Positions 4,150 to 50,941 of a stretch of DNA of 64,000 nt are shown in pieces. Source of the stretch: Obrimoposthia wandeli (Eukaryota); contig CDROCS010001715.1 of assembly GCA_977020255.1 (NCBI GenBank), positions 186,001 through 250,000 of the forward strand. The letters are read 5' to 3'. Below the pieces are notes generated by a model. That model saw nothing but the letters and a program-made list of their open reading frames with translations, did not search any database and had not been told where the DNA came from. How positions within the stretch are numbered: the stretch's first letter is position 1; every line of letters begins with the position of its first letter. The translations under genes were made by a program, and so were the position numbers.

Positions 4150-6072
4150 TATTTTTGAAGACTAGTAACGTTTATTTTAATTTATTTTTTAGGTGTTTAT
4201 TAAAAACCCATTTTTCCTTAAATTCTTCAAATATTTTTAAAAACAAATATTTACAAACCATAACAGTAGTATTTAATAAAGCGGTAATATCTAATCACGT
4301 GTGTGAGAAAATACCTTTTTGATAATATGTGGGATCTTGAATTGAATTCTGGCATTGCTGGGTAGCCAATGAATCTTCCTAAAGTTCACTTTGAACTAGC
4401 ACTTTTCTTTAATTTGGAATCTAAATTTAACCCTTAAAATTTCTGTAAGCAATTTAAATGATTAATATTTGTGCAAACCATTTTGAAAATCAAGTCTTGA
4501 AGTAATAATTCGCACAATGTTAGCATTGGAATTATCTCAGTAGTATTTTCTTTAAAAAAGATCTTATTAGTTAAATCATTTTGATATGTTTTATCACTTT
4601 ATTAATTAGAACGAAAGTTTATTACAATCAATTAAATTATTTGTCTCAATTTTGATCAATTAATGAAGGTATGATATTTTTGAAAGGATTTTGTAAATTT
4701 TCAAAAGATTTTCAATTTTGAATAAAGATTAAAAAAGACATTTTGAAAATGGTAGAAGAAAATCAATTGATTAATATTTTAAAGAAAACAAGATTAGATA
4801 TAATAAAATAAACATAATTCATTAAATATATATTCCATAAGAGCAGCCTCTCATCGACCCGGTAAATTGATTGAGCTTTGATAATCAATACTAAAATGAT
4901 TTGCAGTATTATTAGGTTGAGTTAATGGTAAATATACATTGAATTCTGAGATGCTAATATCCAACTGAGTTTCACTGTATTCGTTTCACTTCTACTAAAT
5001 ATTGTGTATGCTTTCCCGACCCTTTGTCTCTAAGATTTCTTGTATTCTGTATATACTTTTGGTTTTCAGGTAATACTTGTAATTCTTCATCATAAAATTT
5101 ACATATTTTATTTTTTGATCTCCATCCTCAATAAAAGTACATTACTGGAGCAAGTTTGGAATCGATTTTAGTTTTTGAAATACTCCCATCACTCCACCCC
5201 TTCGAAATTCTTTATAAAGCGAGTAGTACTAATTTGTGAAATGTGTACATAATCTCCAATCTTATACTTGGGTTTCTTTCCACTTGAGTCTGATTTCCTG
5301 ACGTTGCCATTATTTCCATAGCATTTTCATCTGAAATATCTATCTGCTCATTTCCATCGAGGGAGAATGCTCATTGTGATTATATACAAATATAATTTTA
5401 GGTAAAATTGTGATCCAAAGTATTTCCTGACTTTTAGTGAAATACTTTTTCAATCGATTCAATCGATCTCAATGTTCAATTAAATCTGTCAACTAGAACT
5501 ATTTTAAATTGAGAAAACATAGAATAATTATTTATCCCAGTTTTTTCATTAAGCCACCAACATGTTTATTATAAAAACTCTCTACCACTATCAGTTAGAA
5601 CATGCATTTCTTTCTGTCATCAATTGTTTCATTGCTTCTAACACATCTATACCAGATTTAGATCTTTAGGCATAGTTTCTAACCTTGCTAAAAACATCAA
5701 CACAAGTTAAAATATATCTGTATCCTGAGCTTTAACGGCACGTTGAATCATCTCCATCAAATCCACTTGCCATAAATCATTACCGTCTGTCTTGTATGAT
5801 CTCGCCGAGAACTGGTGTTTCATCAGTTTGTTCAAGTTGTGCTGCGATTTGTCAACCATGCCCGAGCTTTCTTTTGTTTGTCTTTGCTTCTTTTCCCAAT
5901 TTTGAAATTCCTAAAACCAACGGAATGATTTGGACCGAACCATATTTTCTCCATTGCCAACTAGATGAATTAATTTTAATATTGAGTTTAGAATGAAAGT
6001 TATGTCACCATTAATATCCAGAGATTTTAACTTTCATGTTTACACTATTTTCTATTTATAAATTCCATAATT
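4150..6072 (-). mobile_element. Polinton/Maverick fragment A (integrase plus start of penton), truncated by the LTR at 6073
   Basis: Decayed frames are homologous to the copy C integrase and penton. Left boundary is approximate. Confidence 0.8.
4940..5954 (-). pseudogene. Polinton retroviral-like (c-)integrase, decayed
   Basis: MEKIWFGP start; YKTDGNDLWQVDLMEMI; GYRYILTCVDVFSK; C-terminal KFYDEELQV...KGSGKHTQYLV. These match 50942-51971; several stops and frameshifts. Confidence 0.85.
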
Positions 6073-7463
6073 TGTTATATTACTAATAACTGATCAGTTT
6101 GGGCAAATCCAATATTTCGTAAAATAAGAGTTGGCAATTCCAATATTATATTTGATCAACAGATCAGTTTGGGCGAACCAATATTTCGTAAAATAAGCAG
6201 TGGGCAATTAATTTTGTTTGTCAACAGTCAGTTTGGGCGTTCAACAGGAAATTTCGAAAATCAAAGTGGGCAATTCAATAAAATAAGCCTCAATAAAATG
6301 TTATATTTCTTTTTCTTTGTAAATTCTCAGGAACGATCAAAAACTATTTTAGCAAATTAGCAATTTGTTTTGTGTTTTTCATATATTTGGAACGATCAAA
6401 AATCCAATTCCAATACTTTTTAACAGGAACGATCAAAAATCCAAGTAAATTTGTTTTGTGTTTTTCATATATTTTCCATACAATTGATAAATTAATAAAT
6501 TAAGAATTTGTGGTATACATAAAAATGTTATCCGTAGTTTCCAAATGTAAGTTCTAATAATCACAAATTTTTTAATGAATCCATAAAATTGTAATCCGTA
6601 GAGGCTTATACATGGGACATGCACAGAGTTGAAAAGAGCCATACTGTCCAACTGTGCTGCAGTTGTGTACACACATAGATTAGTGGGCAGAGATGGCACC
6701 ACAACACTATGTTGTATTTTGTCTGAGGAAGGAGAGAGAATCCCTGTGCCAATGCACACACAAACAATCGTCAAGGTTGATCTGGACGTAACAGCTGGGT
6801 ATGGACACACACACACAGAAACTGAAAAGGGCGATACACAATAATAATAATAAAAAATAGCAATTTAACGAGGCAGTAAAAGCTGATAATTGGAGGTGTG
6901 ACATGTACACAACTACTGCAAATAAGCAAGACTAAATAATCATAGGCAATAAAATACGAACTTAAATATCAATAATAATGGTAATAATAATGGTAATAGT
7001 AAAGGTAGAGAATAGTCCTAGAATGTTTAGTGGTAAATCAGATATCAATTAATGTCAGCAATCCGGGGAAAAATGGGCAGCGGAAAGAGAGGATTGTATG
7101 TCCAACTGTGCATGCACATCTCTGCCTTGGTAGCCACCATCCGAAGACGGCCGATCAGGATGACGGGAAAACGATGGGGAAGGATGGCGGGAGAGAGTGT
7201 GTAGCCGGGATCCGCTGACCGTTGCCGACTGAACGAATGCCGACGGCGATCTGCCGCCAGGCTGGGAGACTGGGCGGAAAATTTTTCCATAAATCAATCT
7301 TATCTACATGCCGCCTTCCTGATGAGCCCGGCAGGGCGAAACAGGACTTTCCACCCGTCTGAGGCTGAATTTGAAAAACCTCCCTAATTGTGGGCACTTT
7401 AGATAATTTATAAAATGTCAATTTAAATTGACTTTCTAAATTAATTATTAATTAATAACAACA
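6073..7463 (-). repeat. 3' LTR (left copy)
   Basis: Starts TGTTATATTAC, ends TAACAACA; direct repeat of 20014-21250; tandem units of about 60-70 nt in the first 350 bp. Confidence 0.88.
7313..7365 (+). ncRNA. type I hammerhead ribozyme motif (weakened copy)
   Basis: GCCTTC-CTGATGA-GCCC GGCA GGGC-GAAA-C...GTC-TGAGGC. Core is intact, but stem III has an A-C mismatch and the first stem I pair is C-U. Confidence 0.75.
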
Positions 7464-7799
7464 ATCCTATGGGGGTAAACCAGTCAGACCTCTGACGTTC
7501 ACAAAAAAAATGAAAAATGAATATCCGTTTAGCATGTCTGTCAAAATGTGATTTTAAAAACAAAATTATCAAGGCTGCTAATCCATAATCCAAAAAAAAT
7601 TTGAACGTCAATTTTTATGTTACACTTTCGCGAGTAGTAAAAATATCTATTGCATGATGCATAAAATAATAAGAGTATAATATTTGGTCTTAATTAAAAA
7701 GTTGATGTCAGGATCAAAATTTCAGTAATTTGCAGAAAAATTTTGTATACGAAGTCATTTTAAAAATGATAAACAGTTTAAAAGTTGATAGGTTTTTGA

Positions 7800-10700
7800 T
7801 AACAAATAAGTCAATTGTTTGTGCAGTAATAATAATACCTTTTAACTATACGTTATCTAGAATAAAACAGTCGTTTGAATCAGAGTCGGAGTCGGATATC
7901 TCATTTGGGGTACCCAACAAATCATTCAAACGGAACTCCTCCACCAGTCTTTCTTTACGTTTGTCAAAAACTCGCTTAAGTTTCTTGCGTCTTCTAAACA
8001 AGTGTGATATTTCTTTTGAGATTCTTCTCCAAAATATTTCTCTATCATTGTTCTCAGTGCTATTTTTGGCCTAGTTCTGATCTAATTTCAGTGGATGCAC
8101 CTAGATCTACTATTCTTGCAAACTGACATCTTTCGAGTCGTAAAACTTTTAAATCATTTTCTACTCCCTGCTCCTACTAGGATGTTTCCGACTAGTATTG
8201 TTTGAGCTCTTGCTATAATGTCTTCCGCATCGGCTCTTCCTGTCAATGATTTCTCCGTAAAATGAGTCACTCGATGTACATAATTTCCGGATTCTTTCCC
8301 TCGGTGTGACTATTTCATGTAACACGATCTGGTTCTTTTCATCTATTATCGTGATACTTCCTAAAGCCTGTTTTTGTTAACTGCGGTGGCCATTTCACAA
8401 TCCATAAAAGATTTAACAGGTGCCTGTCTTGTAGGATTATTTTCTATGAACATGATTTTATTTGTCTTTTTTATAAGCTCTATAAAAAATGTATTGCGTC
8501 TAGGACTAAATTTTAATAAATATTCGTTTCTTAATTCGTTTTTTACTGATGGTGTATGAATGATTTTGGAGGAACATGTAACTTAAATCTTTCTCTTGCT
8601 TACTCATTAAGTGGGCTCGTCCTTCTGCTACATGTATCTCTATTTCCTCTATATCTATCAATTCACCTACCAATTCTATTAAACTTATCCTTACATTTTT
8701 TGTATGATGCATGGTGATTATGACACTTTTTCTACTAGTTTTAGTGATTTTCAATTTATTTGGGATGAACGTTTGATTTTCAAAAATGTGTTTGCTCTCA
8801 TCATTATTTTTAAGTTTCTCTTTCCTACTGTCTATACTTCCTATACTTCTTCTATAAAGGAACTTTGCTAAGATATTCATTTTTGGAGTACACTTTGTTT
8901 GTATTTCATCTTTGCTTAAATCTATAACTGGTGGTGAAGGACCGTCTTAACAACTTTCTCCCACTACACGGATCCATTTCCGTTTGTTTGTTGAGTATTC
9001 CATCTGTGATATATATAACAGAATAAGAATACAGCAAGGTCATTAGTCACAAAGCTCATGCAAAAATAAAAATAAATTATTAGTTCATTAGTTAGTTGGT
9101 TAATCAAGAGTATATCTAATATTGTACTAGTTCCTTGTTGCTCGATAATCATAAATAAAGTATAGATATATATATAGATATAATTATGTTTATTATTATT
9201 ATTTTCTCTTCTTTTTCCTTTTTAATTCAGTAAACATTATTTTCCTAAATCATGCTCATCATCTCTATTTCATTCTCAGTCTTTATTAAATGATTTTAAT
9301 TCTACTCACTAGGGGAATTTACTAATTGTCGCATCAGAATCATCGCTTTCTATATGTTGGAATCCCATCAAGTGATTCACCATTGATCGTAAGGATATTA
9401 GTGAATTTAACGCTTCTCTGAGTCTTTGTACTAGTATTTCTTGGCTTGATTGGCTATGTTCTAATCTTTCAATTGCAACGTCAAAAGCATTATTCATTCG
9501 TTCATTCCATTTCCTTGTCTTTTAAATGCGATCTCAGATTTATATTCTCTATCAACAATTTATTTTCCCATTTCTTCTGTCTCTTATATCTTCTTCTATT
9601 ATTTTGTACTAATTTTGAATTTCTCATTTTCTAAAATGTTAAAAAGTTTTTAAGTCTTATTTTAAAAAAAAATAAATAAATAAATCTTTTGATTTTTACA
9701 AATCAGTGTTGTTTTTCTCTTTGTGTTTATAGTTCTTGATTACCGTATCTATTGATGTATTGGATGAATTTGTACCACTTGGTATTATGGATGTTATGAG
9801 TGGACCTGGTGGTCCATACAGTTTGTTTAAGTGAAATGATTTTTTAGTTTTAATTCTTTTAAAAGTTTTTTATTTTTATTATTACTTTTATTAAAATGTT
9901 AAATATTTCAATTATTATTGCTATTATTATCTTAAATTCTGTATGATATATGTTTTTGTGAATGATTTCGTTGACTAAAAAAAAATGTTATATGTTTTAA
10001 GTTCATCGATTTTGATGAATTTATTGTATTTTTTAAAAAGGTTGACTGGTTTTGTATGTTTTCTTTAGAGATGATTGATGATATTTTCTTAAATATTTTT
10101 GTTGTATATTGTGTTAAATATATTTTCATTACTTTTGTTGATTTTAAAATAGGATCTTTTTTATTTTTATTATTAGCCAACTCCGCAAAAAAGAGTTGGT
10201 TGAAACATTTTTGATATCTTTTTTCCTATTGTTTCTAAAGTAGTTATGTTTTTGCAAGTATTCAAAATGTGTCCCCAACTTCTATACATCATTGGTTTTT
10301 ATTTGTGATTACACATTCTCTATATTGCACTATTATTTTCTCTAGATATCTTATATTTTCTATGGTTAAATTTGTTTTAGTTTGTGTATTTTCTAATTGT
10401 TTTTCTGAGTTTTTCCAAAAATTAACATTATGTCCTCTATATCTAATTCTAATGAGGGCTTTATCTAAGTCGTCTATTTTTAGTTGAAATTCCCATTTAT
10501 CATTATTTTATGTTTTGATATATATTTCGCTGTTGTTTCTAATATTGATGCTAGGTATATGTGAGTTGCTATAGTTCGTTGATAAAGTGTAAGGGTGTGT
10601 GTGTTTGATGTTAGTGTAATTTCATATTGTGTTTCATCTCTTAAGAATGGTATTGTATATTTTCGTGATTTTATTCCTATTATTGTTATGTTTTGTTTCT

Positions 10701-10990
10701 GTCTTTTTGTGTAATTTGTATATTTCCGGTTTTGTTTATAAAAAGCGAAATTTTTTAACTTTATAGATGTGATTTCTGGTATTATTGTAATTAAACCAAA
10801 ATTTTTTATAAGATGTGTTGTCGAGTCATGTTTATTTATAACATTTTTTTTATAGTTAGTTTTTTTATCATTTAGTTTGTTAACATTTGCTCCTTGTACG
10901 TTTTTACTTATGAAGAGATAAATTGCGAATATTATTAAAATTTTGAAAAAATCCTTTATTGATATAACTATTGCTTTATTCCATTTACAT
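7800..10990 (-). pseudogene. decayed accessory ORF region between integrase and 3' LTR, unknown product(s)
   Basis: Broken minus-strand frames (8506-8880, 8964-9152, 9309-9497 and others); signal-peptide-like KDFFKILIIFAIYLFISKNVQG near 10890-10960. Confidence 0.45.
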
Positions 10991-11149
10991 TTTTTGTTTT
11001 TAATATTTTTCTCTGTATATCTTGTATTGGTAACATTTGTAAAACTGTGTTTTTGTGTTTGATCTCAAATTATATTTGTGGCTTTTTTTACTGTTGTATT
11101 CTCTTCTGGTACTTGTCGACATCTATTTATGTGTGTTCTTATTTCTTTT

Positions 11150-12250
11150 TGATTTTAGTTCATTGTCGAGTTTAGCTGTTATGTTAGTTCCATTGGTACT
11201 AATAACTGTATATGGTCCTTTTGTATGGTTTTGATAATTTGAGTGATAATCCTACAATGATTTGTGGATTGTGAATCATTATTTACTTCCGATTTTTATA
11301 TTTGATGGTTTAGTTCTTCTATCATAATATTCTTTGTAATTTTCTTGTATGTTTTTACAAATAATTTAGCTTTTCAAATGCTAGTTTTATTCTTTCTCTA
11401 ATTTCTATTTTGTATTCAGGTATTTCTAGGTATTGTGTAGTAGGTTGTAGTAATGTTAGATCAATAGGCATTTGCGGATCTCTGAGGAACATAAGGTAAG
11501 GTGTTTCTCCTGTAGATGCATGTACTGATGTTCTATATGCAAAAAGGCATGGGGGTATGTGCAAATCCCAATCTGTTTGGTTGTTGTTTGTATATGATGC
11601 CATCATATTTTCGAGGGTTCTATTAAATCTTTCTTCTAATCCGTCGGTTTGAGGGTGATATGGTGTTGTATTGATCTTTTTTATGTGAAAGATTTCAGCT
11701 ATTGATGCTAATACATTATTTATAAATTCAGGACCTTTGTCGGTTAATAACTTTCGGGGTGCACTAAAACCTTCGCGATGGTTTCAGCCTTATGATCATG
11801 TGTTGGAAAAGCCTCTGGCCATCTTGTAAAATAATCTGAAAATACTATTATATATCGATTTCCTCGGGGTGTTTCAGGTAATGGCCCCATTACATCCATG
11901 GCAACAGTTTCCATGGGGGCCGATGGATACGGTATTGGTTTTAAAGGTATCTTTGTGGTACGTAAGGTGTTTTTCTTTTAAAGACATATTTCACAAGTAT
12001 TACATCAATTTTTTACATCTTCTTTCATATCAATCCAATAATATTTTAAATTTAATCTCGAATGTGTCTTCTTTGTTGAAAGATGTCCTCCTAAAGCTCC
12101 GTTATGTATTGAAGGAGTAATTGGCATTGTATTTCTTTAGGTATAACTAGTGAGTACTGATTCTTATCGTTGCAATAATGGAAAAGGTGGTGACTGAATT
12201 TATACCGAGATTCAAGTTTTAAATGTTGTCTTAATTTTTCATCTGTTGGA
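11150..12250 (-). pseudogene. gypsy integrase
   Basis: YWIDMKEDV..CNTCEIC zinc finger; METVAMDVMGPLPETPRGNRYIIVFSDYFTRWPEAF; PYHPQTDGLEERFNRT; WDLHIPPCLFAYRTSVHASTGETP; PYKGPY (GPY/F). Confidence 0.93.
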
Positions 12251-12399
12251 ACTTGATTGATGGTGATATACTTAATTATTTGTTGTAATTCCGTATCTTT
12301 GCTTTGAAGATCGGTGATTACTTTATCATCATATCGAGCCTTGATTATTGTAAAAATATTTAATTCGGTGTCATTGGAATTTATTACATTTACTTCTTC

Positions 12400-13620
12400 T
12401 CTTATTCTAGAATAGGCAATCTGCATTGGCATTTGATTTACCTTTTCTATATTTAATTTCAATATCATATTTTGGAGAATTAACGCCCATCTCATTAGTC
12501 TAGATGTTGTATCTTTATGATTTAGTAGCCACTGTAATGGTCTTTGATCAGTATAAACGTGAACTTTTCGACCTAACAAGTAATGTTTAAAATGTTCCAT
12601 TGCAGAAACAAATAGCGAGGCATTCTCTTTCTATTGTTGAATAATTTATTTCGTGTTTTTTAAGACCTCTGCTTGCGTACGCTATCACATGATCTTTTCG
12701 TTATTATCCTGTTGTCCTAGTACTGCTCCTAACGCGTATCCACTTGCGTCAGTCATTACTAGAAACGAGTTGTTGAAATTAGGATATCTCAATATAGGTT
12801 TTTCAATCAATTTTTGTTTTAAGTACTCGTATGACTCTTGTTGTTCCGTTTCCCATTCAAATTTTTCATCCTTTTTAATAAGTTTGTTTAATGGTGTTGC
12901 TATTTGTGCAAAGTTTCTGATAAATCGACGATAATATCCTGCAAGTCCTAAAAATTCTTGTATATTTTTTACTGTTTTTGGAATTGGAAAATTCTTTATT
13001 TTTTCTATATTACTTTCATCTGGTTGAATTCCTTTTGCTGATACTGCGTGACCTAGATAATTCACTTTGTCTTTCATCCATTCACACTTTTTTGGTTTTA
13101 ATTTTAAACCTGCTATTTTTAATCTAAGAAATACATTTTCTAAATCTTTTAAATGTTCTTCAAAATTTTTTTGAAAAAATTAGAATATCGTCGATATAAA
13201 CCATGACATGATCGGCGTCCATCAAAATGTGGCTCATGCATCTCTGAAATGTTGCTGGAGCACCTGTTAATCCAAAAGGTAAAACGTTAAATTCGTATAA
13301 TCCTTCTCCTGTTGAGAATGCTGTTTTTCTGTATCTGATTCCTCTATTTCTATCTGCCAATATCCACTTTGTAAATCTAAGGTTGTAAATATTTTTGCAT
13401 TTTTTAGTTTATCTAAGATTTCATCAATTCTTGGAAGCGGATACGTGTCTTTATGTGTGATCTCATTTAATTTTCTGTAATCTACGCAAAATCTTAGTGA
13501 ACCATCTTTCTTTTTATCAAAACAACTGGAGATGTCCATGCTGAAAAACTTCTTCTTATGATTTTATTCTCTAACATTCCTTTTACCTGTCTTTGAGCTT
13601 CTTCTCTGTAAGCGTATGGG
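12400..13620 (-). pseudogene. gypsy reverse transcriptase and RNase H
   Basis: [86 protein letters not shown]; frameshifted. Confidence 0.95.
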
Positions 13621-13822
13621 ATACGGTAAGGTCGTTGTTTGATTGCTGTATTAATAGTTAACGGAAGGTTATGTTTAATTAAATCTGTTCGTCCAAGGTC
13701 ATATTCATTTTTGCAAAAATTACGTCATATTTTTCCATCAATGATTTTAATTTTGATTTCTCATAATCATTTAATCTAATATTTTCAAATTTTACAGTGG
13801 AATTGTCTTCTATTTTTCATTA

Positions 13823-14215
13823 TTAATTAATTCTATATTCTCTATAACACTTATTTTTCCAAGGCGTGTTCCTACTTTTTAGATGAATCTCGTTTATGTC
13901 TCCATTTAGTATTCTGATAGGTATTGTATTATTTTTTATTTTACAAATTATATTTGGTAGAACGTAATTTAATGTTTCCTGTTGATATTTATAAGGTTCG
14001 AATAAGATGTCTTTTTCTGTAACTATGTTAGTTTCTAATTGTAATATTGTTTCTGTTCTAGGTTGAAGGATGATATCTCCTTTTATTTCCAATTCGTATT
14101 CGCTTTTAGCGTTTGGTCTGTAAATGTCTTTAATTTGATTTTTCTCGAAGTCGAAATGAAAATTGTTTCCTAATTTCCTTAATATATCTATTCTATTATC
14201 ATCTGACATGGACAA
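13823..14215 (-). pseudogene. spacer between protease and RT, possibly a degenerate dUTPase-like fold
   Basis: IILQPRTETIL...LFEP...PIRILN pattern, like spacers seen after the protease in some gypsy pol proteins. No catalytic dUTPase motifs were recognised. Confidence 0.35.
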
Positions 14216-14219
14216 TTTT

Positions 14220-14455
14220 TCATTATTCTAGTAGGTATTTTTATAAATTTATCTCCTATTTTAAAAATGCCATCTAATTTACTAATAATATTTACGGGTT
14301 GACCGTTTGCTGCTGTTATTTGACTGTTATCTGTGTGAAGTAGTGATATTTGGTGTGGTTTAAGAAAGACTCGTCCAAAACTGTTACGCTTGATCCTGTG
14401 TCAATTAAAGCTTTTAATTTGTACTCATTAATTTCAACTTTTTACATAAGGTCGT
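14220..14455 (-). pseudogene. retropepsin (aspartic protease)
   Basis: Removing one A from an A-run near 14440 gives RPYVKVEINEYKLKALIDTGSSVTVLDE (DTG catalytic motif). Confidence 0.9.
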
Positions 14456-16506
14456 CTATCATTATCCATTTGATTTATAGTATATATTGTTGGTGCAGTT
14501 GATTTTTGAACTTTTGTTTCTTCTTTATATTTTTCTAAATCGGGGTATTGTGTAGATTCTGTATTCTCTTTATTTTTATTGTCTACTATTTTTTGTAAAT
14601 TTGTTTCTCGCATTTCGTTTGATAATGCGTTTACAGTATTTTGATGATGATTAAATATAAGAAATTTTGCCAAAAATGGAAAACATCCTAATATTAGTTT
14701 CCATGTTAATCCTCCAACTTTATAAATATAGTATGTGGATAAAATTTGACTCAATAGTATTTTAAAGCATATTAGTAGTGCATATATTCCTACAAGTCCA
14801 GAAAATGCTTGTCCAAAAATTAAAAATTTCCCCCATATTTTTGACATTGTATTTTTTGTAGCTTTTATGTAATGGTTTGGAGAAAGTAATAAATCATAAT
14901 CAGGACGGCTAATTCCGTCTGGTACTGATCTTTCTATGATTTGTGTTAAAATTCGTGATCTTATTTGAGGAAATAAAATTTCTTTTCTTAATTTATCTAT
15001 ATCTTCTTGTATGTAAATGCCTTTTGTATTTAGTTCATTGTCTGGATTTATTTCTATGTCATTTTTTAGATTAGTTAATTGTAGTTTTAGTGGTTGAGCA
15101 ACTATGTCTCTTCTTGGTAATGTTATCCATATATATTTTGAGATTTTATAATGAGGTGCCATTATGTTTGAACAGTTTATTTTTTTTATGCTGAATGTGT
15201 TAAAAAGTATTATTCTGGTGATTGGTTCTACAAATAATGAATGATTTTTGTATGAAATTGGCAATTCTTTGGTACATTTATTGTGATTTCTTATATTAAC
15301 TATTACTTTTTGGCATTGATACGTATATAGTACCTCTCCCATTACTCTTCCGAAAGTACCATCTGGTAACGGTAATAATGGTGTTATTAATTCTGGATTT
15401 GTAGCAATAATTGCTAGTTTTGTTTTCAAAATTTCTTGATTTAATTTACAGTCATTCATTATTGTTTCTCTATAAATAGCTTCTATTGTCATTAATCCTT
15501 TGTGATAAAAATAATCTAATTTATTATTGAAATAATCGTAATTTTTTATATCAAATTTTGTTGGTGTAGTTTTTGCATTATAAATTTTTCTTACTTAGAT
15601 ATATTCCTTTATAATTAGTTGTATAAATAGAGTGTCCACATCGGGATTCCTCTTTCTTTTTAATAAATCGCATACCTGAACCTCGTTCAGTTGACATTAA
15701 AATAGTTGGAGTTGATGTTTTTGTATTTTTCTAGTTCTATATTTTTAAGTATATTTTTTGGAATTCGTTGATCTAACTCTGGATCATCTTTGAATCTTTG
15801 ACCTTGAATTATTTGGAAATTTTCTGATTTTAGTAGTATTAATTTACATTGGTCTGTTTTACCTTATAGTATAAAATTGAAGATCCTGTGTTACAATATC
15901 CGATATTTGCTGCACAGAATGGCATAGTCACCATGGTATTTGTAGATGGATCAAATGTTGCCTTAAATGTTCTTAGTTCTACCTCAAAGTTTTTTATAAC
16001 TACTAAACCACTTTGTTTAACTCCCATTACGACGTATGATCCTGTTGTGCATTCTCCGTCAGATTTGATAGTTCCTACCACCGTAATCATTTGTTGTATT
16101 ATTTTGTTTTTTATTGCTTTTACTTTTATTTCTCTATCTATTCTCAGTTCGCCTGTTGCAAAAGCATCTTTACAATTTAACGCGTCAACAATTATTGGTG
16201 TTTTTCCTAATGCTGGCTTAACAATTGAATTATGGCTGTGTTGAATGTTATGAATGTTTCCACATGTACTCTACATTCGAAAACTTCTGTATTTATGTAA
16301 TCTGTTTCCTGGTATACATGAAATAACTTGGTGGTTTAAACTTTTACTTCATTTGGATCTGCGTCGGCGCATTGTTGTAAATCCATTAGTGAATATTTAT
16401 TTTGAATACTATATTTTGAACAATCATATGCTTCAAGAGCATTTATAGGTTTTATTATATTTGTAATTATACATATCATAAATATTATTTGAATTATTTT
16501 CCATAA
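14434..16506 (-). pseudogene. class III viral fusion glycoprotein (chuvirus G/herpes gB-like env) with internal signal peptide and C-terminal TM segments
   Basis: LWKIIQIIFMICIITNIIKPINA/LEAYDCS...YSLMDLQQC; G..GRVMGEVLYTYQC...KCTKELPI....FVEPITRII...C....P.Y.I...W; hydrophobic GQAFSGLVGIYALLICFKILL and WKLILGCFPFLAKFLIF. This Cys/motif pattern matches chuvirus-type glycoproteins. Confidence 0.8.
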
Positions 16507-18358
16507 ATTCTGGATGATTTTGTTAAAATTATATGTATTTTTAAGATTTGAATTTTTACTATTTTTTGGTGATTTTCGTTTATTTTTATTTTTCGATTTT
16601 TTATCTTGTGTTTGAGTGGTTTGATTTATTTTTGTACTTATTTGTGTTCTTTTTTCTAATGTTAGACAACCGTTTCTAAATATTTCTCCGAATTCGGATT
16701 GAGAGTTGGTACTATTTGTGTTTTGCTCATTGTTTTGGTATTGCTGATGTGTTTCTTTATAGCGATTATCTATTTCTTGTTGTCTTAATCTCATCAATGC
16801 AACTTCTTCTGTTTCCTGAGTTATATCAGTGTTTTCAATAGTATGTATTGGGTTTCTGTAAGCATATTGTTGATTTTGATTGTTAAACTGTACTGTTTTT
16901 TGAATCTGTGGTTGTGGTTGTTGTTGTTGTTTTATTGTTGTGTTACCAAATTGATTCATCATTGTATTTAGTTTGCTACATTCATCCGTATTGTGATTTT
17001 TCATATTACAAATTTTCCAAAATTTTGTATTAGTATTAAAATATTTAGCTTGATTATTTTGATTACTGAAATTATTATATGGGCTTCTAAAATTACTATT
17101 TGTATTTTTGAAATTATTATTTGGATTGTTGAAGTTATTATTTTGTGGTCGTATATTATTACTTTGTCTGTATAACAGTTTTCGGCAAGTTTCAATAGTA
17201 TGATTGTCTTTTTTTACAAAATCTACAAAATTTGTTGTTGGTTATTTTATAACAATTCTCTATTGTGTGATTTTGCAGTCCACAATTTGTACATTTTTGG
17301 AAAGGTCTTTGTGTAATTTGTGAGTCTGTATAGTTTCTGTTTGTTTGATTCCTATAAAAGTTATTTGTCGGTGGTGTATATTGTTGCTGGTTTTGGTAAT
17401 TAGATTGTGTATTTGGGTTATAGTTTTGAGTTTGATTGAAATTTGGTGGTGTTGTAGGTCTTTGTATTTTTTCAAAGGTTAATGCTGAAACTTCAGATTG
17501 TTGTAACATGTTTAATCTTGTTTCTACAAGTTGAGCCTTATTTACAGCTTGCTGAAAGTTTTCTACTTCTAGTAGAGCTGGATGATTTTTGATTTTATTA
17601 TTTAATCCATGTAGAAACTGATGTAATAGTAAGCGCTCTCTTAAAACTTCCTCAATTCCAGGGAATGATTTTAGGGCTAAACGTCTTAATTCAATTGCAA
17701 AAATATTTGTGGGTTCTCCTAAATGTTGCTCACGTTGTCTAAACTGATTTAAGTAATTTTGCTCTGATTGGGTTCCTAAAATCATATTTTGAAAATTCTG
17801 AACTAAATGGTTCCATGTGTCTTTTTGTTCATTGTTTAATTCTATATAACTTGTTAAGGCAGTGCCTTTTAAATACGCTGGAAAAACCCTAAGTTTCTCT
17901 TCATTAGTCCATTCAAATGCCTGAGCAAATGAATCAAATCTATTTAAAAATTCGGGTAATGAAGATTTATCGCCATTGAAAGCGTCCAAAGGATCATTTA
18001 ACTTATGTTCAGCCATTATTTGAGGTTGATTATCTATTTCTATATTATTTGGTTCGTTCAATTCGGGTTCTGGTGTGTTTGTAGTTTGAGTAGCTTCTGT
18101 TGAGCTATCGGTTTCTAGTGTTTGGTTAGTAAGGCCATCTGTTAGACTTTCTGAGCTGGTTAAGTTTAGTTGGATTGGGTGTTGGTGTTGTAATGAAGTT
18201 TCTGGGAAAAATTCGCTATTTGTTCTAAAGCTTATTTGAGATTTAGGTCTCTGTGGTGGTGATTCTTTAGGTTCTGTTCTTACTAGTCGGGCTTGAATTC
18301 GTCGCCAGTGAAGACTAGCGCTACGTTTGGATTTATGAATTTTATTATTTTTATTTAT
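16507..18358 (-). pseudogene. Gag with three CCHC-type zinc knuckles and Asn/Gln-rich linkers
   Basis: Capsid-like FLNRFDSFAQAFEWTNEEKL...LKGTA; knuckles CTNCGLQNHTIENC, CRFCKKDNHTIETC and (W)KICNMKNHNTDEC; one frameshift in an A-run near 17212. Frame is open up to 18358. Confidence 0.88.
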
Positions 18359-19994
18359 TCAACGCTTTTTATCACTATGTTGTAGATTTTATTAAAGTTG
18401 TTGAATTTATAATATTTAAATAACCAATTTTTAGCTTTTTTTGAATCAGATAATTTGTCCCAGACTTCTCAAGATTGCTGACCTATTGGATGTCGGCTAT
18501 CCTTGTTTCGCAATTATGAAAAAATGGATACAGAAAAATCTTGTTCAAAATTCTGTAAGTGCTTGAGGTTGATCACAGTATCCTTACTTTTGAATAAATC
18601 AGTTATACACTACCGCTAAGGGTCAATCTAATTCAGTTATATTATTGTTACGTATAAAAAAAAAATTTTGATTAATAAAATATTATTTGATTTGATTACT
18701 TTTATTACAAACAGCAAGTCAATTAATTGTTTGTTATACTTTATCAATGAAGATAGGAATAAAAATATTTATATATACGCAGCACAATAGGATTATTTAT
18801 TGATACTTTTCAAAGTTAAATTTGAAAAATGGAATACAATATATACGATTTTAATAATTATGAATTAGTTATAACTTTTAATGATGTCAACTTTTTAATG
18901 TAACAACTCTATGGTTCCAAATCAGTTTACCAAAGAATAAAAATGAATGTAAAATAGTAAGTCCAACTTCGAGAGATAATATAAATGGTATAAGTAGTTG
19001 AATCAAAAATCAAATACAATTGTAAAGCCGTAAAATTGTTTTTAATAAAAATTATGATATATGAACTTTTAAACAGTAATTATATTTTCAGAAATGTTTA
19101 GGTCAAGGTATTCCTACAGTCTCCCGCAATTCTATTTTCTACCTTCTTAACCAACCACCAAGACCACAACTGCTCCCTTATTCTACGGTTATCTGCTTAT
19201 TTTGGTCTCGGAACCTTTGTTTCGATTACCGCAGAGAGAGGAACAGTCCCGCTCAAAAATGGTCGAAAATTTTCAAACAATACTCGTGAGACTATAAGAA
19301 TCCCTAATTTTCAAAAATAATATTTATACGATTATGACATTCTATCTATCACTATTAGAAATAAATATAATTTTAAATACAATAATCAATTTTTAACACA
19401 AAAAAAAAAAAAACTATATAATTTTAGTTTATACTTTTTTAAATTTTCAGTTATTTATTGTAATCTCTACTTATATACACATATATAAATGGAAATTAAC
19501 TGAATATTTTATTCCCAGAAAAGAAACCGCAAAAATAAATATGTTAACAAATAAACCCAAAATATGAGTTTTAAAATTACTTCAAAGAAAACAATATAAA
19601 TATATTCTATAGTAAAATTTATGTAAGTTATGTTGTTCAAAGTTATTTATTGGATTAGTTTATAGAAGTTTGTGTTATAACCACAAATCAAATTCACAAT
19701 ACCGTTAAATGTAAATAAATTGAATATTACAAATGATGGAGTTAATATTAATAAAATTGAATACTAAAATGATTGTTAATAAAAAGTTAATTTTCAAAAA
19801 TTGAATTCAAAGTTCTCTAGGGCAACTAATCACAAATGAATACTACAAATTGTTATAGCTATAAAAAGTATTTAAATAGTTTCTGTTATTTTGAGCTTAA
19901 TGCAAAATCCGACCAAATAATGTTAATATATGAAAATGTAAAACAAAAACCAAAAATAAGGTAAAATCAAAATAATAAATGACCTGCTTGCGTT

Positions 19995-20011
19995 CTGGAT
20001 CGGGCTCACCA
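19995..20011 (-). promoter_or_regulatory. primer-binding site
   Basis: Minus strand reads ...ATATTACA-AT-TGGTGAGCCCGATCCAG directly inside the 5' LTR. TGG is complementary to tRNA CCA; the cognate tRNA was not identified. Confidence 0.8.
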
Positions 20012-20013
20012 AT

Positions 20014-21250
20014 TGTAATATTACAAATAACTGATCAGTTTGGGCAAATCCAATAATTTCGTAAATAAGAGTGGGCAATTCCAATATTATATTTGATCAA
20101 CAGATCAGTTTGGGCGAATCCAATAATTTCGTAAAATAAGAGTGGGCAATTCCAATAAAATAAGCCTCAATAAAATGTTATATTTCTTATTTCTTTGTAA
20201 ATTCTCAATTGATCAACAACTATTTTAGCAGAATTAATTTTGTTTGTGTTTCGTTCAACAGGAACGATCAAAAATCCAATTCCAATACTTTTTAACAGGA
20301 ACGATCAAAAATCCAAGTAAATTTGTTTTGTGTTTTTCATATATTTTCCATACAATTGATAAATTAATAAATTAAGAATTTGTGTTATACATAAAAATGT
20401 TATCCGTAGATATACGGGACAAAAATCAATCAGTGTAAGAGAGGCTGTGATGCATGCATGCACCCAGGTTGAAAGGACGCCAAACTGTCCAACTGTGCTG
20501 CAGTTTCTACACACATGCATTTAAATGGAGCCATCAAACACTATATGATCCAGAATCCCTCTCGAAAACACATTCACGGAATCTGCTAACAAACACACGC
20601 ACACACAGAAACTGAAAAGGGCGATACACAATAATAATAATAAAAATAGCAATTTAACGAGGCAGTAAAAGCTGTAATTGGAGGTGTGACATGTACACAA
20701 CTACTGCAAATAAGCAAGACTAAATAATCATAGGCAATAAAATACGAACTTAAATATCAATAATAATGGTAATAATAATGGTAATAGTAAAGGTAGAGAA
20801 TAGTCCTAGAATGTTTAGTGGTAAATCAGATATCAATTAATGTCAGCAATCCGGGGGAAAATGGGCAGCGGAAAGAGGGGATTGTATGTCCAACTGTGCA
20901 TGCACATCTCTGCCTTGGTAGCCACCATCCGAAGACGGCCGATCAGGATGACGGGAAAACGATGGGGAAGGATGGCGGGAGAGAGAGTGCAGCCGGGATC
21001 CGCTGACCGTTGCCGACTGAACGAATGCCGACGGCGATCTGCCGCCAGGCTGGGAGACTGGGCGGAAAATTTTTCCATAAATCAATCTTATCTACATGCC
21101 GCCTTCCTGACGAGCCCGGCAGGGCGAAACGGGACCACCCCGTCGGAGGCTGAATTTGAAAAACCTCCCTAATTGTGGGCACTTTAGATAATTTATAAAA
21201 TGTCAATTTAAATTGACTTTCTAAATTAATTATTAATTAATAACCCAACA
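20014..21250 (-). repeat. 5' LTR (right copy)
   Basis: TGTAATATTAC...TAACCCAACA; near-identical to the left LTR except a central block and the tandem-repeat region. Confidence 0.9.
21101..21150 (+). ncRNA. type I hammerhead ribozyme (intact)
   Basis: Stem I GCCUUC/GGAGGC, CUGACGA, stem II GCCC-GGCA-GGGC, GAAA, stem III ACGGG-ACCAC-CCCGU; cleavage predicted after C21144 (GUC). Confidence 0.92.
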
Positions 21251-23450: not shown

Positions 23451-24100
23451 ACATAATTTTGAATCAATAATATGAGATAACTTCCAGATATACCTAAATT
23501 AAATATAAAAATCAAATCGTCTTGCTGTAATGGAGAAAATATGGCTCAATCCAAGTCATCCTGTGGGTACACAGGAGTTTCAAAATTGGCAAGAGAAAGG
23601 GAAAGAAAGGGAAAGAGAAAACTTAGATGTGGTTGAAAATTAAACTAGCTTACAGCTTAAACAAACCGATGAGACATCGGTTCCCAACGAGATCATACAA
23701 ACCGAGCGGCCTGAATGATTTATGGCAAGCATATTTGATGGAAATGATACTGTATGAGAGTATTAAAAATATATATATTTTAACTCGTGTTGATGTCTTT
23801 AGTAGATTTGCAAGAGCTCTAAAGTCTAAATCCATAATGATGTTTTAGAGACAATGACGCAAATGATAAGGGAAATAAAACCAGCAAATTTCCAAATAGA
23901 TAGTGGAAAGGAATTTTATAATAAACATGTTAGTACATTATTAAAAAACATGATAATAATCATTATTCAGTGTTTTCTCAATATAAAACTGCCTTAGTTA
24001 AGCGTTTTAATCAAACATTAAGATATATATTGAAAGAGTATTTCACTAAGCAGGAAAATATAACCTGAGTCAGCGTTTTACTTCAAATAATACATGCATA

Positions 24101-25169
24101 TGTTGGGAATATCTTATAAATATTTATTTAAAAAATAAAAAATATATATATATATATATAAAAATTAAAAAATGAGAATTAATTAATTAAGGAATTAATT
24201 AAGAATTTCCCTTATTAGGGAAAAGTTCTATTTAGATAAAATATGCACTTTGGCATTTTAGTTTAGAGTGGTTAATCTCCGACAGGAAAAAAAAACGTTT
24301 CGCCCTGCCGGGCTCATCAGGGAGATGGCTTGTTATCTCTGACTTCGCGGTGGGTTCTGCGAAGCCAGAGATAACAATAATAAAAAGCCAGAGAAAAGAA
24401 GGAAAGATTTCCCTTTTCATGTGGCGACGAATATCGTCGACATGTGATGTTGGTGTGCGCAAGTACACATTTCAACACACACACTCACACAGCGGACATC
24501 ACTCAACACACTCACACAGCGGACATCACTGTACTCACTCACTTATTCTCTGTACTCACTCACCTACTCTCAGTCTTGTGTATGTGTGTGTATTTTATGC
24601 AAAACTATTTTCCTCTCTGTCCAGATACGATTCTTGCGGACAGATGGGCAGTTTGCTTGTGTGATCGTTTTCTCCCTCTTCCCAGATGCGCTACAATCGA
24701 TTGGCATGTGGGCATGATTTCGCGCTTCCAGTTGTGGGCAGCGTTTTCATCGGCACATATCCCCAGCGGAAGAATAAATTGTTGTGTACCTGCTATAAAA
24801 GCAACACATTTTCAATAACTAAAAAAGTCATGATTACACAGAAAAATACAGAATCATAAATATTATTATTTTATCATCGTTATTAAAACTGATAGAACAT
24901 CAAATTATTGAACTATATTTAATTGAAATCAGGACTATATTGTTATTCTAAAATTGAACAATTTGATTTGATTTGATTTTCCAGCTATTACTTTGGAAAC
25001 ATTATTCTATTATTTTAGAAACAATTTGAACAATTTGATTTTCCAGCTATTACTTTGGAAACATTATTCTATTACTTTAGAAACAATTGGATTTGATTTT
25101 TTCGGATATTGTTTTGATTAAGACAATAAAAATTGATAATAAAATTACTTATTATTCAATATATTAACA
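24101..25169 (+). mobile_element. solo LTR of a family related to 6073/20014, in opposite genomic orientation
   Basis: TGTTGGG...ATATTAACA; perfect 4-bp TSD CATA (24097-24100, 25170-25173); related tandem repeats at 24950-25110; TATAAAA near 24795. Confidence 0.92.
24275..24326 (-). ncRNA. type I hammerhead ribozyme
   Basis: Minus strand reads ATCTCC-CTGATGA-GCCC GGCA GGGC-GAAA-CG(T9)CCT-GTC-GGAGAT; perfect 6-bp stem I and minimal stem III. Confidence 0.88.
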
Positions 25170-26329
25170 CATACAATCATAGTGAACAGTCATCATTAGA
25201 GAGAAAGAGACCTATTGATGTTACAGATGAAAATGCTATCAAAATTTGGCAACATCGTAATCAAAGAAAAGTTGTAAAGAAACCCAAGTATAAAATTGAG
25301 GATTATGTACGTATTTCTCAAATTAGTACTACTCCTTTTATAAAGAATTTCTAAGAGAATCGAAATTAAATTGAAGGGGGAAAATTTGAAATAGTTTTTA
25401 ATGATGAAATTATTGCAGAACAATATGTATTTCCAACTAAACCTAATGATGGAAAATATGTGGCTTCAGGAATTATGGATAAACATAGTAAGTATCCAAT
25501 AATATGTTTTAAGATAAAAAAAATAATTCACTAAACATGAGAGGAAAAAAAACAAAAACTTATATATTCAAAATTTAAACTACTTAAAATCAAAAAAGTA
25601 AAACCAAAAGCAATGTTAAAGAAAAATATACAAAAATATACAAATTAATAAGTAAAGAAAAAATTACTATTTTTATTCAAATTTTCTGATTGGATTGAGA
25701 GTAAGTTCTACATTAAGTTAATCTCATTGGCTTAATACTATTTTAAAAATAGTATATAAGAAAGTACGAAGCAGCTGAGAATGGTAAGATTATTGATATT
25801 ATTTTTAATTTATCTTTTTCAGAATTGCAAGATGAATAATAAACTCTGTTTTAATCGTCAACAAGGCCAACCCCCTCGACTTCCCATCATGTTCAATGTT
25901 CCATACAACGTTCTCGATGTACCACATCGCTAATCGAGAATGCAACCATGCGGAAGTCCCGAAGAGCGAAGAGCGGACCAGCTCAACAACCAACAATAAC
26001 CGAAAGTAACTTTTTGACAAAAACGTGACATCATGAACTAACCCTGTGTATCGCATACTGCGATAAAATATCTACCAGAAATTGTATGTTATAAATTAAA
26101 TCTTCTTGTAAAATTGTAACGATTCTCGACGATTTTAAGTATGTTGTATATTTGGAACTGTAATTATTATAATTGAAACTCCTAAAGACAATCTTTTTAT
26201 ATCTGAGAAGTGAAAATCATCAAAATAGTGACAAAATTCGGTTAAGTAGCTTAGGAAGAGATAAAAGTTTGTATAAGGATTTAAATTAATACACTCCCAA
26301 AAAACCTAATCATAAATAATGCCATGCAT

Positions 26330-39099: not shown

Positions 39100-41339
39100 G
39101 TAAGCCTCGTATTCCAAAATCCCAATTCTGCTGGCACAGTTTCTGGGAATAGTTTTGCCATTTCTGGGGGTTATGAACCAGTCCTCAACAGTTTAGAAAC
39201 GACAAGCCAAAGCCATAGATAAATATGAGTGAATCTAAACTAAGTTTTATTATTTTCACCTATAGGCTACTTAGTACTTTACTCCTTTTTGGCACATTTA
39301 ATAAAGTGCAATCCTTACTACACGAATCGATTTGCAGTCATTTCAAGCTTATTCAGCGAACTTTGGATTTCTATGAAAAAACAGATATCTGCATATATGT
39401 GATGTTGGGATTCAAATGGTGTTACCTCTTTGTTGCGACATACATATATTCGACAGAAATTAGCAAACTCCTTCTTGTATAAAGGTGTCATCCTTCTCAT
39501 TGACGTCAAACTTATAGATTATAATTTATATAATTAGTTTTGTCATCCATTTTAGGTGAGCTCTATAATCATCTACAATTGCAGGTGACCAAATTCTTAG
39601 ATTAGGTCAGCGCTGGGGCTCACGAAGATAACCTGTTTGTGAACCCTGTTGTCAGACACTAGCATTAACCAATCTGGCACATTTCGAGCAGTGTGATTAG
39701 AGACATGCGCAAATAGCTTTGGAATGAGCGGTGGCGTTACGTACTAATTATTAAAAAATTTAACCAACTTTAAAATATTTTTTTATCAAATTCATCCAAC
39801 ATCGACAGTTCTATTTACAAAACAATATTTTAAAATAAGATTTTTAAAAAAATTACAAAAGGAAATCTAGTCGAGAAAATAAAATTTAATACAAGTTATG
39901 TTTTGCTATTTTTTTCGCGTAATCAAATTTTAGTATCACAGATATTGACAGTAATCAAGTAGAGCAGCTAGCCGAGAGTCAATTTTTTTAAAAATAATTC
40001 GAAATTATTTTCAAATATCTAAATAACTAAATTAGCGAAATTTTCAAATTCGCTTGATTACAATTCTCGGTGACCAACATATTAACAATTCATTTTATGT
40101 TATAACTTGTATTTCTATAACTATTGTTAAAGATTTAAGAAACGCATCAAGACCCACGACAAGCGTTTGTGTATATAAAAATAAGAATATACACAGAGTT
40201 AAGTGAATTCATATCTAAATAAAAGTGCTTAGTTTAAATTAAACAAATCAAATTTGTTTTCTTTATAAACATAAAATTATTTTAAATAAATAAATTATAA
40301 AATTTTCATATTGTTGCTTACAGATTTGTCAACGCTGATTGACAAAAAAACAAAAAAATATTTATTTTCATTTGATTTTATCTCATTTTTGGTGTCTTAT
40401 TAAAATGACACTTAAATCAGTTACTGGTTAACTAATGTCTTAATTTCTTTTTAAATGGTTTTCAAATGCCATATCATTAACCATACATGGATTTATAAAA
40501 AAACGATTTTGAAATAAATAGAGAACGTAGGCAATAAAATAAGTCATGATTTCCACACCCACTCAGTGAGTCAATATCTGAGAAAGCAAAGTCACAAAAC
40601 TACTGTTACGACTCGAGTTGGTAAAGACCACCAACATCGTTAGTCGGTACTAACCGACTTTATTGTCCATCAATATACCACAAATGACAACTCAATTTAT
40701 CACCACAGCTCACGAGACTACTCGTCACTCTCAAATAGATGTATATGTCATCGCCAAAATTCTGTGATTCTACAATAGCGAAACAGCGTCATGAAATTTC
40801 TCTTTTCATCTATTTACTTGAATTATATGGTAGCATGCATTTAATTTGAATACTCAATATTTTTTTTGAATTTCATATTTGACAATTAATTGAACTTTAT
40901 GAACATAAATTAAAGTACAAGTTGTTAAAGGGAATGACTTTATTGAGAAAACGGTCTTCAAAGATGCATGGGTATTTGTTTTCAACCGTTTTATAGCTTG
41001 AAAATCTAATGTGATGATTAAAAATGGACAGCGGTAGAATTAAACTATCAAAGCTGAAAACCACAGATTTTCATGATAATTTAAATTTTATTTATTCTTC
41101 AATTATTTTGTTAGCTAAATTTTTCTTCCCATCTTTATTATTTTGAAATATATTTATTTTTTATTTTAAATAATTGTGACAAATATAACCCAATTTTTAA
41201 AATTGAAATAAAAAGTGATTCATTAAAATTTTCTGAATGACTACAAACTCACCAATAGAAACATATTTACTCTTGTTTTTACAGCAAATCGAGTGATCAA
41301 AGATGGAAGACTTTCTAAAATTCTGACAACGTTACTAAC

Positions 41340-42780: not shown

Positions 42781-44281
42781 TCGCATCTTCTATTAAAATC
42801 AAAATATGTCACTATAATTGTGTTAGTTTGAAGTTTAACTTTGAGATTGTAATCGAAAATTTTGCGTAGCTTCACAGTAAATATTTTGATTGGAGATTTG
42901 TAATAGAAATGCAATTTATTTAAACTTAAAGTTATTTTTGAATATTCAAGTCAGAATGAACTTATGCTTCTAAATTTATCTGAAATGTTTATGGAAAAAG
43001 CATACATACATACCATTTATGATACTATGTGTATGCTTTGTTATTTTTGCTGTAACGATTGTTGAATAATGAATAATTAGTAACATATTAACTAATTTGT
43101 CTTCAAATCATAAGCCAATCTTATTATACACTTCCACCGCTCAATTTTATCGAAAAGATACTGGTTATGTTGATTTATTTCTGTTAATTTTTATTCCTTA
43201 TTTTCAATGTTGGTCGGATAATTCAAAGACATAAATATATTTCAAAATAAAAAAAAGATGGGGAAGAACAATTTAGCTAACAAAATAATTGAAAAATAAA
43301 TACAATTTAAAATTATTATAAAAATCTGTGATTTTCAGCTTTGATAACCTCTCTTGATAGTTTAATTCTGCCTCTGCCCAACAACAAAGGAAATGTTGAT
43401 TAAAAAATATCACAATAGAGTCAATTAATATTTGTAACATATGCACTTTAAAACGTAAACGAGTTCCTACGATAATAAAAAATGAGTATTTACAGTCACC
43501 TCATAAATTCGATATCAGAAATTATTTGTTCCTAAAAATTATAAATTATCCTGGATTTAAAACGATAAACTTCCAGTAACTTATTCCATAGCGGAAGATA
43601 GTTGGGAAAAGGCACGTGAACGAGTTGAAAAAAGAGTTTGGTTACACTCAAGTCATTCCTAGATCAGGTAAAACAAGCAAAAACAAGCCATTGTCCCTAC
43701 CATGGGCAATGAGTTGAGCTTCTGACAATTATAAATCTGTTCATTAACTAAAGGACCCAGATGAACTGAAGAGAAAGAGCAAGAGAGCCTCGATGGTAAG
43801 ACATAATTATTTTCTCTGACAAAGTAACTTTATATATCAATGAGAGCGTAAATAGTCATACTTTTTTCTGAGGAAAATCTGAATCAGATTATGGAGAAAT
43901 CAGAGAAGTCAGTGCCAGTGACAATTTGGACAATGATTCCATCGGATGGTTTTGTTCAATACAAATGTTTACACGTCACAAGGAACCATTAAGGGTATTG
44001 CATTTTTTTAATGAGCGTGTTTTTAATTTTAACAAGTGACCGCTACAACCAAGATATGTATATGTTAGCGGAAATATACATATTCCGGTAAATAAAATTG
44101 TTCCTAAATGATTTTTGAAAATTCTTCTTTTTCCATACGCTTCTTTGTATTTGTAAACTTTAAAACCTCCATCTTTGTCCACATTACAAAAGGTTTTCAG
44201 ACAGCAATTCGTCGAAAACAAATTTTGTTGTTAAATTCAGTTTCTATATATCTAAACTTACCACCCTCTAAACGTACCCAG

Positions 44282-45246: not shown

Positions 45247-45340
45247 ATTTTGACTCGTATTTTGTTTTTCTCCTTTAAATAATATAGATCTGACCTTATT
45301 TTTCTCTTATAAATCTGACCTAAATATTTAACAAAAACAT
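45247..45340 (+). repeat. near-identical inverted copy of part of the Polinton C left end
   Basis: Reverse complement of about 48274-48367 with 2-3 mismatches. Confidence 0.85.
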
Positions 45341-50853: not shown

Positions 50854-50941
50854 AAACAATTAATTCAAAAATCAGCTAAAGATATGGGTGCTAACCCTTC
50901 TTTACCTAAATTTAAATTTTCTATATATTGAAATTGTTGTA

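Follow-up and report, generated by a model that had tools for sequence, protein, structure and literature searches.

A predicted type I hammerhead ribozyme in the long terminal repeats of a GAG-ENV-POL Ty3/gypsy-type retroelement, antisense to its carrier

Known carriers of hammerheads

So far, the hammerhead ribozymes of eukaryotic genomes have been linked to non-coding retrozymes, to Penelope-like elements and satellites, and to a small number of introns. The subject of this report is a predicted type I hammerhead located in the long terminal repeats (LTRs) of a GAG-ENV-POL Ty3/gypsy-type retroelement of Obrimoposthia wandeli. The element lies in a 64,000-nucleotide (nt) stretch of genomic DNA (GenBank assembly GCA_977020255.1, contig CDROCS010001715.1, positions 186,001 to 250,000 of the forward strand), which was analysed as a whole and is referred to below as the window, with positions counted from its first letter. 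Hammerheads have been reported in plant LTR retrozymes, where they are of type III and the carrier is non-coding, in Penelope-like pseudo-LTRs and non-LTR retrozymes, where they are of type I, and in satellites (PMC4918200, PMC7761336, PMC7229834). The GAG-ENV-POL order with a class III envelope gene (env) has already been described as well, in Ty3/gypsy elements of Nematoda, Bryozoa, and Platyhelminthes (PMC13524379). This survey of envelope-carrying gypsy elements catalogues LTRs and primer-binding sites (PBS), and the words "hammerhead" and "ribozyme" are absent from it. Full-text literature searches found no hammerhead in the LTRs of coding LTR retroelements, in agreement with a first-pass annotation of the window, made from the letters alone, which had held that a hammerhead in the LTRs of an env-carrying Ty3/gypsy element was not known to have been described. 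For GAG-ENV-POL elements the envelope survey cites Sacco et al. 2022. The ribozyme and the element class are each known. Novelty lies in finding the two together, with the ribozyme antisense in U3, and in seeing this in two LTR families.

The motif, its three copies, and their strand

The hammerhead copies of the window, with the letters used for them below, are:

21101..21150, + strand: hammerhead copy R, type I, in the 5' LTR of the element and antisense to the element; predicted cleavage after 21144
7313..7365, + strand: hammerhead copy L, in the 3' LTR of the element; core intact, two stem positions unpaired, loop III longer
24275..24326, - strand: hammerhead copy S, inside a solo LTR and antisense to that LTR

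Judged by its sequence and predicted fold, the motif at 21101-21150 is a genuine type I hammerhead for which catalysis is predicted. Read 5' to 3', copy R comprises one strand of stem I, CUGACGA, stem II (GCCC/GGGC with the loop GGCA), GAAA, stem III, C17, and the return strand of stem I. Stem III is made up of the A15.1-U16.1 pair and CGGG/CCCG around a 5-nt loop, ACCAC. Stems I, II, and III have 6, 4, and 5 bp, respectively, and helix I is open, with both RNA ends in it. The core nucleotides (C3 U4 G5 A6 N7 G8 A9, G12 A13 A14, the A15.1-U16.1 pair, and an H17 other than G) are complete in all three copies. The first-pass annotation had described a complete type I hammerhead at this place, and all core nucleotides and three stems are indeed present; the predicted site of cleavage after 21144 is the same in both analyses, and the motif is conserved across the LTR copies, though copy L has its two unpaired stem positions. 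The corresponding predicted cleavage sites are 7359/7360 in copy L and 24281/24280 in copy S.

Searches with descriptors and models place the motif well outside chance expectation and below the usual reporting threshold. Two sites in the window fit a strict type I descriptor (minimum stem lengths 6/4/2 bp), and 300 shuffles that preserve dinucleotide content gave no such site; a loose descriptor yields a mean of 0.057 sites per dinucleotide shuffle. A search with Rfam hammerhead models, suggested along with the first-pass annotation, gave a divided result: Hammerhead_1 (RF00163) aligns to copy R from end to end (model positions 1-45; 25.3 bits, E 6.5e-4 in a search of 501 nt). This stays under the gathering score of 34, since copy R departs from the seed families in its stem sequences and in having a longer stem III. 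A gathering-mode Rfam search of the whole window returned zero hammerhead matches. In the whole-window search by E-value, both element-LTR copies were lost to filters and copy S surfaced as a weak type III match; default Rfam thresholds miss such hammerhead copies. A covariance model built here from the three copies (R1) scores copy R at 75 bits and, run on the 64-kb window, gives no further match beyond copies R, L, and S. On the ribozyme strand an ATG open reading frame (ORF) of 110 codons, 20840-21172 (+), covers the GC-rich LTR block together with the hammerhead. Pfam gives no match to this ORF, which is probably a consequence of the composition.

The element that carries copies R and L is defined by the following features:

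6073..21250, - strand: whole GAG-ENV-POL Ty3/gypsy-type element, 15.2 kb
20014..21250, - strand: 5' LTR, 1,237 nt, TGTTGGG...TTACA in element sense; hammerhead complement at LTR positions 101-150 (U3)
19994..20011, - strand: PBS-like site, TGG..., 2 nt past the terminal CA of the 5' LTR; unique in the window
17195..18358, - strand: gag (Retrotrans_gag domain), in one open piece
14437..16443, - strand: env, class III fusion glycoprotein (PF24664 Monjiviricetes_fusion), with frameshifts and stops
11159..14400, - strand: pol region with reverse transcriptase (RT), RNase H (RH), and integrase (INT), with frameshifts and stops
7944..8823, - strand: remains of an accessory RNase T-like (DEDD exonuclease) ORF (tblastn E 9e-9), intact downstream of pol in relatives
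6073..7463, - strand: 3' LTR, 1,391 nt; hammerhead complement at LTR positions 99-151

The hammerhead thus lies, as the first-pass annotation had stated, inside the LTRs of an env-carrying Ty3/gypsy-type element. All domain matches and all tblastn matches to relatives fall on the minus strand in the order gag-env-RT-RH-INT; a protease, present in the relatives, was not detected in the window element. The PBS-like sequence, TGGTGAGCCCGATCCAGA, begins on the minus strand two bases after the ...TTACA end of the right LTR, and no tRNA gene in the window could match it and so name the primer. The tract preceding the 3' LTR is weakly purine-rich, the 4-mers flanking the element (AATT and CATT) match at three of four positions, and the AT skew is consistent with a minus coding strand. 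In element sense the LTR starts with TGTTGGG, which in two relatives comes after a purine-rich tract at the start of the 3' LTR; this too fits the assigned orientation. Inner LTRs that would mark the coding region as a nested insertion in a plus-strand element were looked for and none was found. Since both the genes and the PBS-like site are on the minus strand, the plus-strand hammerhead is antisense to the element. It sits approximately 100-230 nt inside the 5' edge of U3 in both LTR families, upstream of any plausible promoter.

The strand relation bears directly on a model that the first-pass annotation implied, in which a sense-strand ribozyme processes the element's own transcripts as in retrozymes and Penelope-like elements. 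The presence of a hammerhead in each LTR is the point in its favor; coding capacity, the PBS-like site, and LTR polarity are all on the opposite strand, and we regard the model as very improbable. The antisense relation, like copy S, had been missed in that annotation. Its description of the element as "autonomous-type" holds for the architecture and not for the copy, which is heavily broken: in alignments to three relatives, 4-9 switches of frame are needed and 8-38 stops are crossed, the figures varying with the relative and with the span compared. The window copy is dead and non-autonomous. Two relatives retain an intact ORF with an RNase_T domain (DEDD exonuclease) after pol (L022, 9547-11622; L024, 7920-9260). 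ORF3s of the DEDDy type, which belongs to a different DEDD subfamily, have been reported for LTR elements of bdelloid rotifers (PMC5408684).

The third copy lies in a separate insertion:

24101..25169, + strand: solo LTR of a related family, 1,069 bp, TGTTGGG...TTAACA

This LTR is flanked by a perfect 4-bp target duplication, CATA, at 24097-24100 and 25170-25173, and interrupts a chromovirus integrase/chromodomain fragment. The window also holds two paralogues of this fragment, which run through the corresponding point without a break. The LTR ends, the duplication, and the uninterrupted paralogues together identify 24101-25169 as a solo LTR in plus orientation. It carries TATAAAAG about 700 nt in from its start. 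Copy S, CUGAUGA-GCCCGGCAGGGC-GAAAC, was found by the Rfam E-value scan and by a search with the core pattern. It occupies solo-LTR positions 175-226, a place equivalent to that of copies R and L and in the same antisense orientation, and has stems of 6, 4, and 3 bp, stem III being short with a U-rich loop. Directly upstream of it, in ribozyme sense, lies a palindrome with 17-bp arms (24332-24375) that is absent from the element's LTRs. The palindrome offers an alternative closed stem I, for which reason Rfam reports copy S as a weak type III match (32.8 bits against a gathering score of 48.5). The same palindrome also yields a spurious mir-3119 match on both strands.

The solo LTR belongs to a family that differs from, and is related to, that of the element's LTRs. 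Between the two, blastn aligns only 38 nt, and these are the hammerhead itself. In a global alignment of the R family with S, core and stem II match at 23 of 24 positions, N7 being the sole difference, and the flanks are 47% and 59% identical. Stem I has changed at five positions between R and S and is still fully paired, by way of two compensatory pairs and one change from G-U to G-C; its G-U pairs fit the hammerhead strand only. Copy S is the best evidence for the motif as an inherited feature of the LTR. The 24-nt pattern of core and stem II was also found at 21 loci in metagenome, prokaryote-genome, and viral collections, all of them GC-rich bacterial or phage hammerheads that share the exact CUGAYGA-stem II-GAAAC block of the window copies. 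Their stems I and III are unrelated to those of the window copies, and the 24-nt matches are therefore convergent. Stem II with its loop is a recurrent convergent solution, and identity in stem II alone is no proof of common descent. This convergence in unrelated hammerheads, together with the Rfam score under the gathering threshold, speaks for reading the motif as a chance resemblance, or as a DNA or RNA element of the sense strand that is merely hammerhead-like on the other strand. Such a reading is hardly credible in view of the empty result from 300 shuffles under the strict descriptor and of three copies whose compensatory stem I changes and G-U pairs work on the hammerhead strand only.

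Conservation, decay, and a possible role for the hammerhead

The two LTRs of the element differ in an uneven manner. In the alignment of the block 20601-21244 with its partner in the other LTR, the 53 hammerhead columns hold six substitutions and one gap event; the 596 flanking columns hold four substitutions and two gap events, none of them in the 94 nt downstream. Differences between R and L fall at N7, one stem III position, loop III, and the first stem I pair. The clustering of differences in the ribozyme, noted in the first-pass annotation, stands on these counts (six substitutions in 53 columns against four in 596), and it is real even with the loop III changes counted as one event. The differences had been placed at N7 and stem III; both do differ, and so does the first pair of stem I. 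Any of three causes could explain the cluster: constraint that is relaxed or missing in a dead insertion, local mutability of a hairpin rich in GC and CpG, or short-patch conversion. The LTR pair is moreover a mosaic, with a U3-side block that is ~99% identical and an R/U5-side half (6073-6800 and 20014-20600) that is ~83% identical (~17% diverged), with large and numerous indels and a ~70-nt tandem repeat whose copy number differs between the LTRs. Simple sister LTRs would hardly show such a pattern, which points to conversion, recombination, or unstable repeats.

What is observed here is the motif itself, the strand and place that it occupies, and the fact that two LTR families conserve it. 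With roughly even confidence, we propose that the genuine hammerhead is a maintained LTR module of this GAG-ENV-POL lineage that truncates antisense and read-through transcripts at the LTR edge; the catalysis, the antisense transcription, and any benefit to the element are what we infer. The genomic RNA of the element would carry only the complement of the hammerhead and would remain uncut. The ribozyme would fold only in antisense RNA, whether this is read in from neighboring DNA or starts in the LTR itself through divergent or antisense transcription. Such RNA would be severed after C17, which in the 3' LTR lies ~100 nt ahead of the point where antisense RNA enters the coding region, and in the 5' LTR ~100 nt ahead of the point where it leaves the element. 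Cleavage would uncap or truncate antisense RNA at the LTR boundary and might leave fewer long antisense or chimeric transcripts. Under the LTR replication scheme, genomic RNA cut by a U3 ribozyme of the sense strand would lose R and the tail, which would block first strand transfer, and therefore only the antisense orientation would be compatible with replication. The orientation that would be expected for an active hammerhead in the LTR of a coding element is seen twice. The island of conservation (23/24) and the compensatory changes in stem I argue for constraint in the past.

Several observations weigh against a maintained and active module. Both carrier elements in the window are dead copies and copy L is decaying; with one unpaired position in stem I and one in stem III, it is the poorer of the two element-LTR hammerheads. 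The score of copy R, 25.3 bits, falls short of the RF00163 gathering score of 34. Covariation in stem I rests on three sequences and is statistically weak, as 47 of 500 shuffles do as well. Catalysis and antisense expression of the window hammerheads are predicted properties. A loop-loop tertiary contact between helices I and II is typical of fast natural hammerheads. Stem I of the window motif is a plain 6-bp helix with no evident loop for the tertiary contacts that speed natural hammerheads, and on inspection helix I has no internal loop that would extend its pairing.

Related elements add further points of this kind. A search with an env piece retrieved relatives at 46-50% identity, which are long env-protease-pol polyproteins, with env fused to protease and pol, or gag-env polyproteins; a word-indexed env search matched one contig of 1.9 kb, and a search with the gag protein found no homologue. 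Eight ORFs of the window, looked up by exact sequence, had no identical entry in the collection. Eight contigs of related GAG-ENV-POL elements from other samples (L022-L029), with zero complete LTR pairs among them, were available for comparison. The three-copy covariance model, run unfiltered on six of them (80 kb), gave no match, and a generic core scan on both strands of all eight (~110 kb) found no hammerhead. In two of the relatives, which alone allow a test of conservation outside this genome, the start of the 3' LTR is recognizable as a purine-rich tract followed by TGTTGGG, the terminus shared with the window element, and the next several hundred bases hold no ribozyme. Because the hammerhead is absent from the relative contigs, the module is not general to the clade; it appears to be specific to the lineage seen in this genome.

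Some of these same observations favor a tolerated passenger, in which an ancestral LTR captured a piece of DNA with a hammerhead, perhaps out of a Penelope-like element or a repeat of retrozyme type. Only antisense insertions would have survived, since genomic RNA would be cut by a sense copy, and the motif would persist with no service to the element. The relatives share the LTR terminus without the motif, copy L is already short of two stem pairs, the differences between the R and L LTRs pile up in the motif rather than sparing it, and outside the present case animal type I hammerheads go with Penelope-like elements and non-LTR retrozymes. Set against this are a core and stem II that remain 23/24 identical between LTR families with barely alignable flanks, stem I changes that are compensatory, and the fact that nowhere else in the 64 kb does the hammerhead occur in a Penelope-like or tandem retrozyme setting. 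We consider a passenger possible though less likely, and hold it as the main alternative.

Two further proposals would give the ribozyme a function in antisense RNA. The hammerhead may have been kept as a counter-defence that cuts every antisense or read-through transcript where LTR and body meet, or excises it as a unit between the two LTR ribozymes, and so blunts silencing of the element by double-stranded or small RNA; we think this unlikely. Alternatively, an antisense transcript might be cut at the hammerheads of both LTRs, releasing a unit of ~13.8 kb with 5'-OH and cyclic-phosphate ends that a host ligase could circularize, in the manner of retrozymes. The two hammerheads do stand in direct orientation, one per LTR, which is the geometry of plant LTR retrozymes. 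Known ribozyme circles, however, are 0.2-1 kb and non-coding, whereas here the RNA would be very long and antisense to all genes, and retrozyme hammerheads are of type III and described as cutting the retrozyme's own transcript. Excision of this kind is accordingly rated as improbable.

Should truncation of antisense transcripts by a maintained module prove correct, it would provide a testable link between self-cleaving RNA and the control of retroelement antisense transcripts. An LTR hammerhead antisense to a gag-env-pol retroelement would add a new carrier class, and would bring with it a structural rule, namely that antisense orientation alone is compatible with LTR replication. It would also raise the question of what role a ribozyme has for, or what effect it has on, an element whose RNA it cannot cut.

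Neighboring repeats and comparison with known systems

The window has a G+C content of ~30% and is rich in the remains of other mobile elements. A chromovirus-type integrase/chromodomain region is present in three diverged copies (66-78% identity), at 4994-5991 (-), 23494-24100 plus 25174-25355 (+), and 50888-51971 (+), the last of which has rve and Chromo matches. The solo LTR lies inside the second copy, and the full element starts 82 bp from the first. Two adjacent ORFs at 55209-57163 (-), one with a DNA_pol_B_2 domain (E 4e-17), suggest a protein-primed polymerase element of Maverick/Polinton or similar type. An ORF at 49827-50141 (+) has a TATA-binding-protein (TBP) domain (PF00352, E 2e-11) and possibly represents an exon of a TBP-like gene belonging to the host. 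Two pairs of inverted repeats, 45247-45340 with 48275-48368 (98% identity, 3.1 kb apart) and 41046-41157 with 43231-43346 (91%, 2.3 kb apart), look like the terminal inverted repeats of DNA transposons.

Among described systems, the GAG-ENV-POL elements are alike in their gag-env-pol order, a class III (gB/G-like, PF24664) env, LTRs, and a PBS, and the window copy differs from them in being degraded. It departs from the layout of insect-type errantiviruses in that its env sits between gag and pol. With regard to the motif itself, Rfam Hammerhead_1 is matched by a full-length alignment, an identical core, and three helices, and the difference lies in the score (25.3 against 34 bits). Plant LTR retrozymes (PMC4918200, PMC7761336) share with the window element a hammerhead in each LTR, the termini of LTR retrotransposons, and a connection with Ty3/gypsy; their 4-bp target duplications have a perfect counterpart at the solo LTR and one matching at three of four positions at the full element. 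They are, however, small and non-coding, and the accounts of their type III hammerheads have these cleave the transcript of the retrozyme itself, which yields circles of 600-1000 nt, whereas the window element is 15 kb long, has a coding architecture, and carries a type I motif antisense to its PBS and genes. Penelope-like pseudo-LTRs and the non-LTR retrozymes of metazoans (PMC7229834; bioRxiv 10.64898/2026.07.22.740005) resemble the locus in having type I topology in an animal-type repeat, and the short stem III typical of their motifs is seen in copy S. In such repeats each tandem or pseudo-LTR unit carries a type I hammerhead, in association with a Penelope-like RT and a GIY-YIG endonuclease. 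The window contains no tandem or pseudo-LTR arrangement of hammerheads, all three copies being in true LTRs, although no exhaustive screen for Penelope-like coding domains was made. In contrast to Penelope-like elements and non-LTR retrozymes, the carriers in the window are true LTRs that end in TG...CA, with a target duplication that is perfect at the solo LTR, and the ribozyme they hold is antisense to its carrier.
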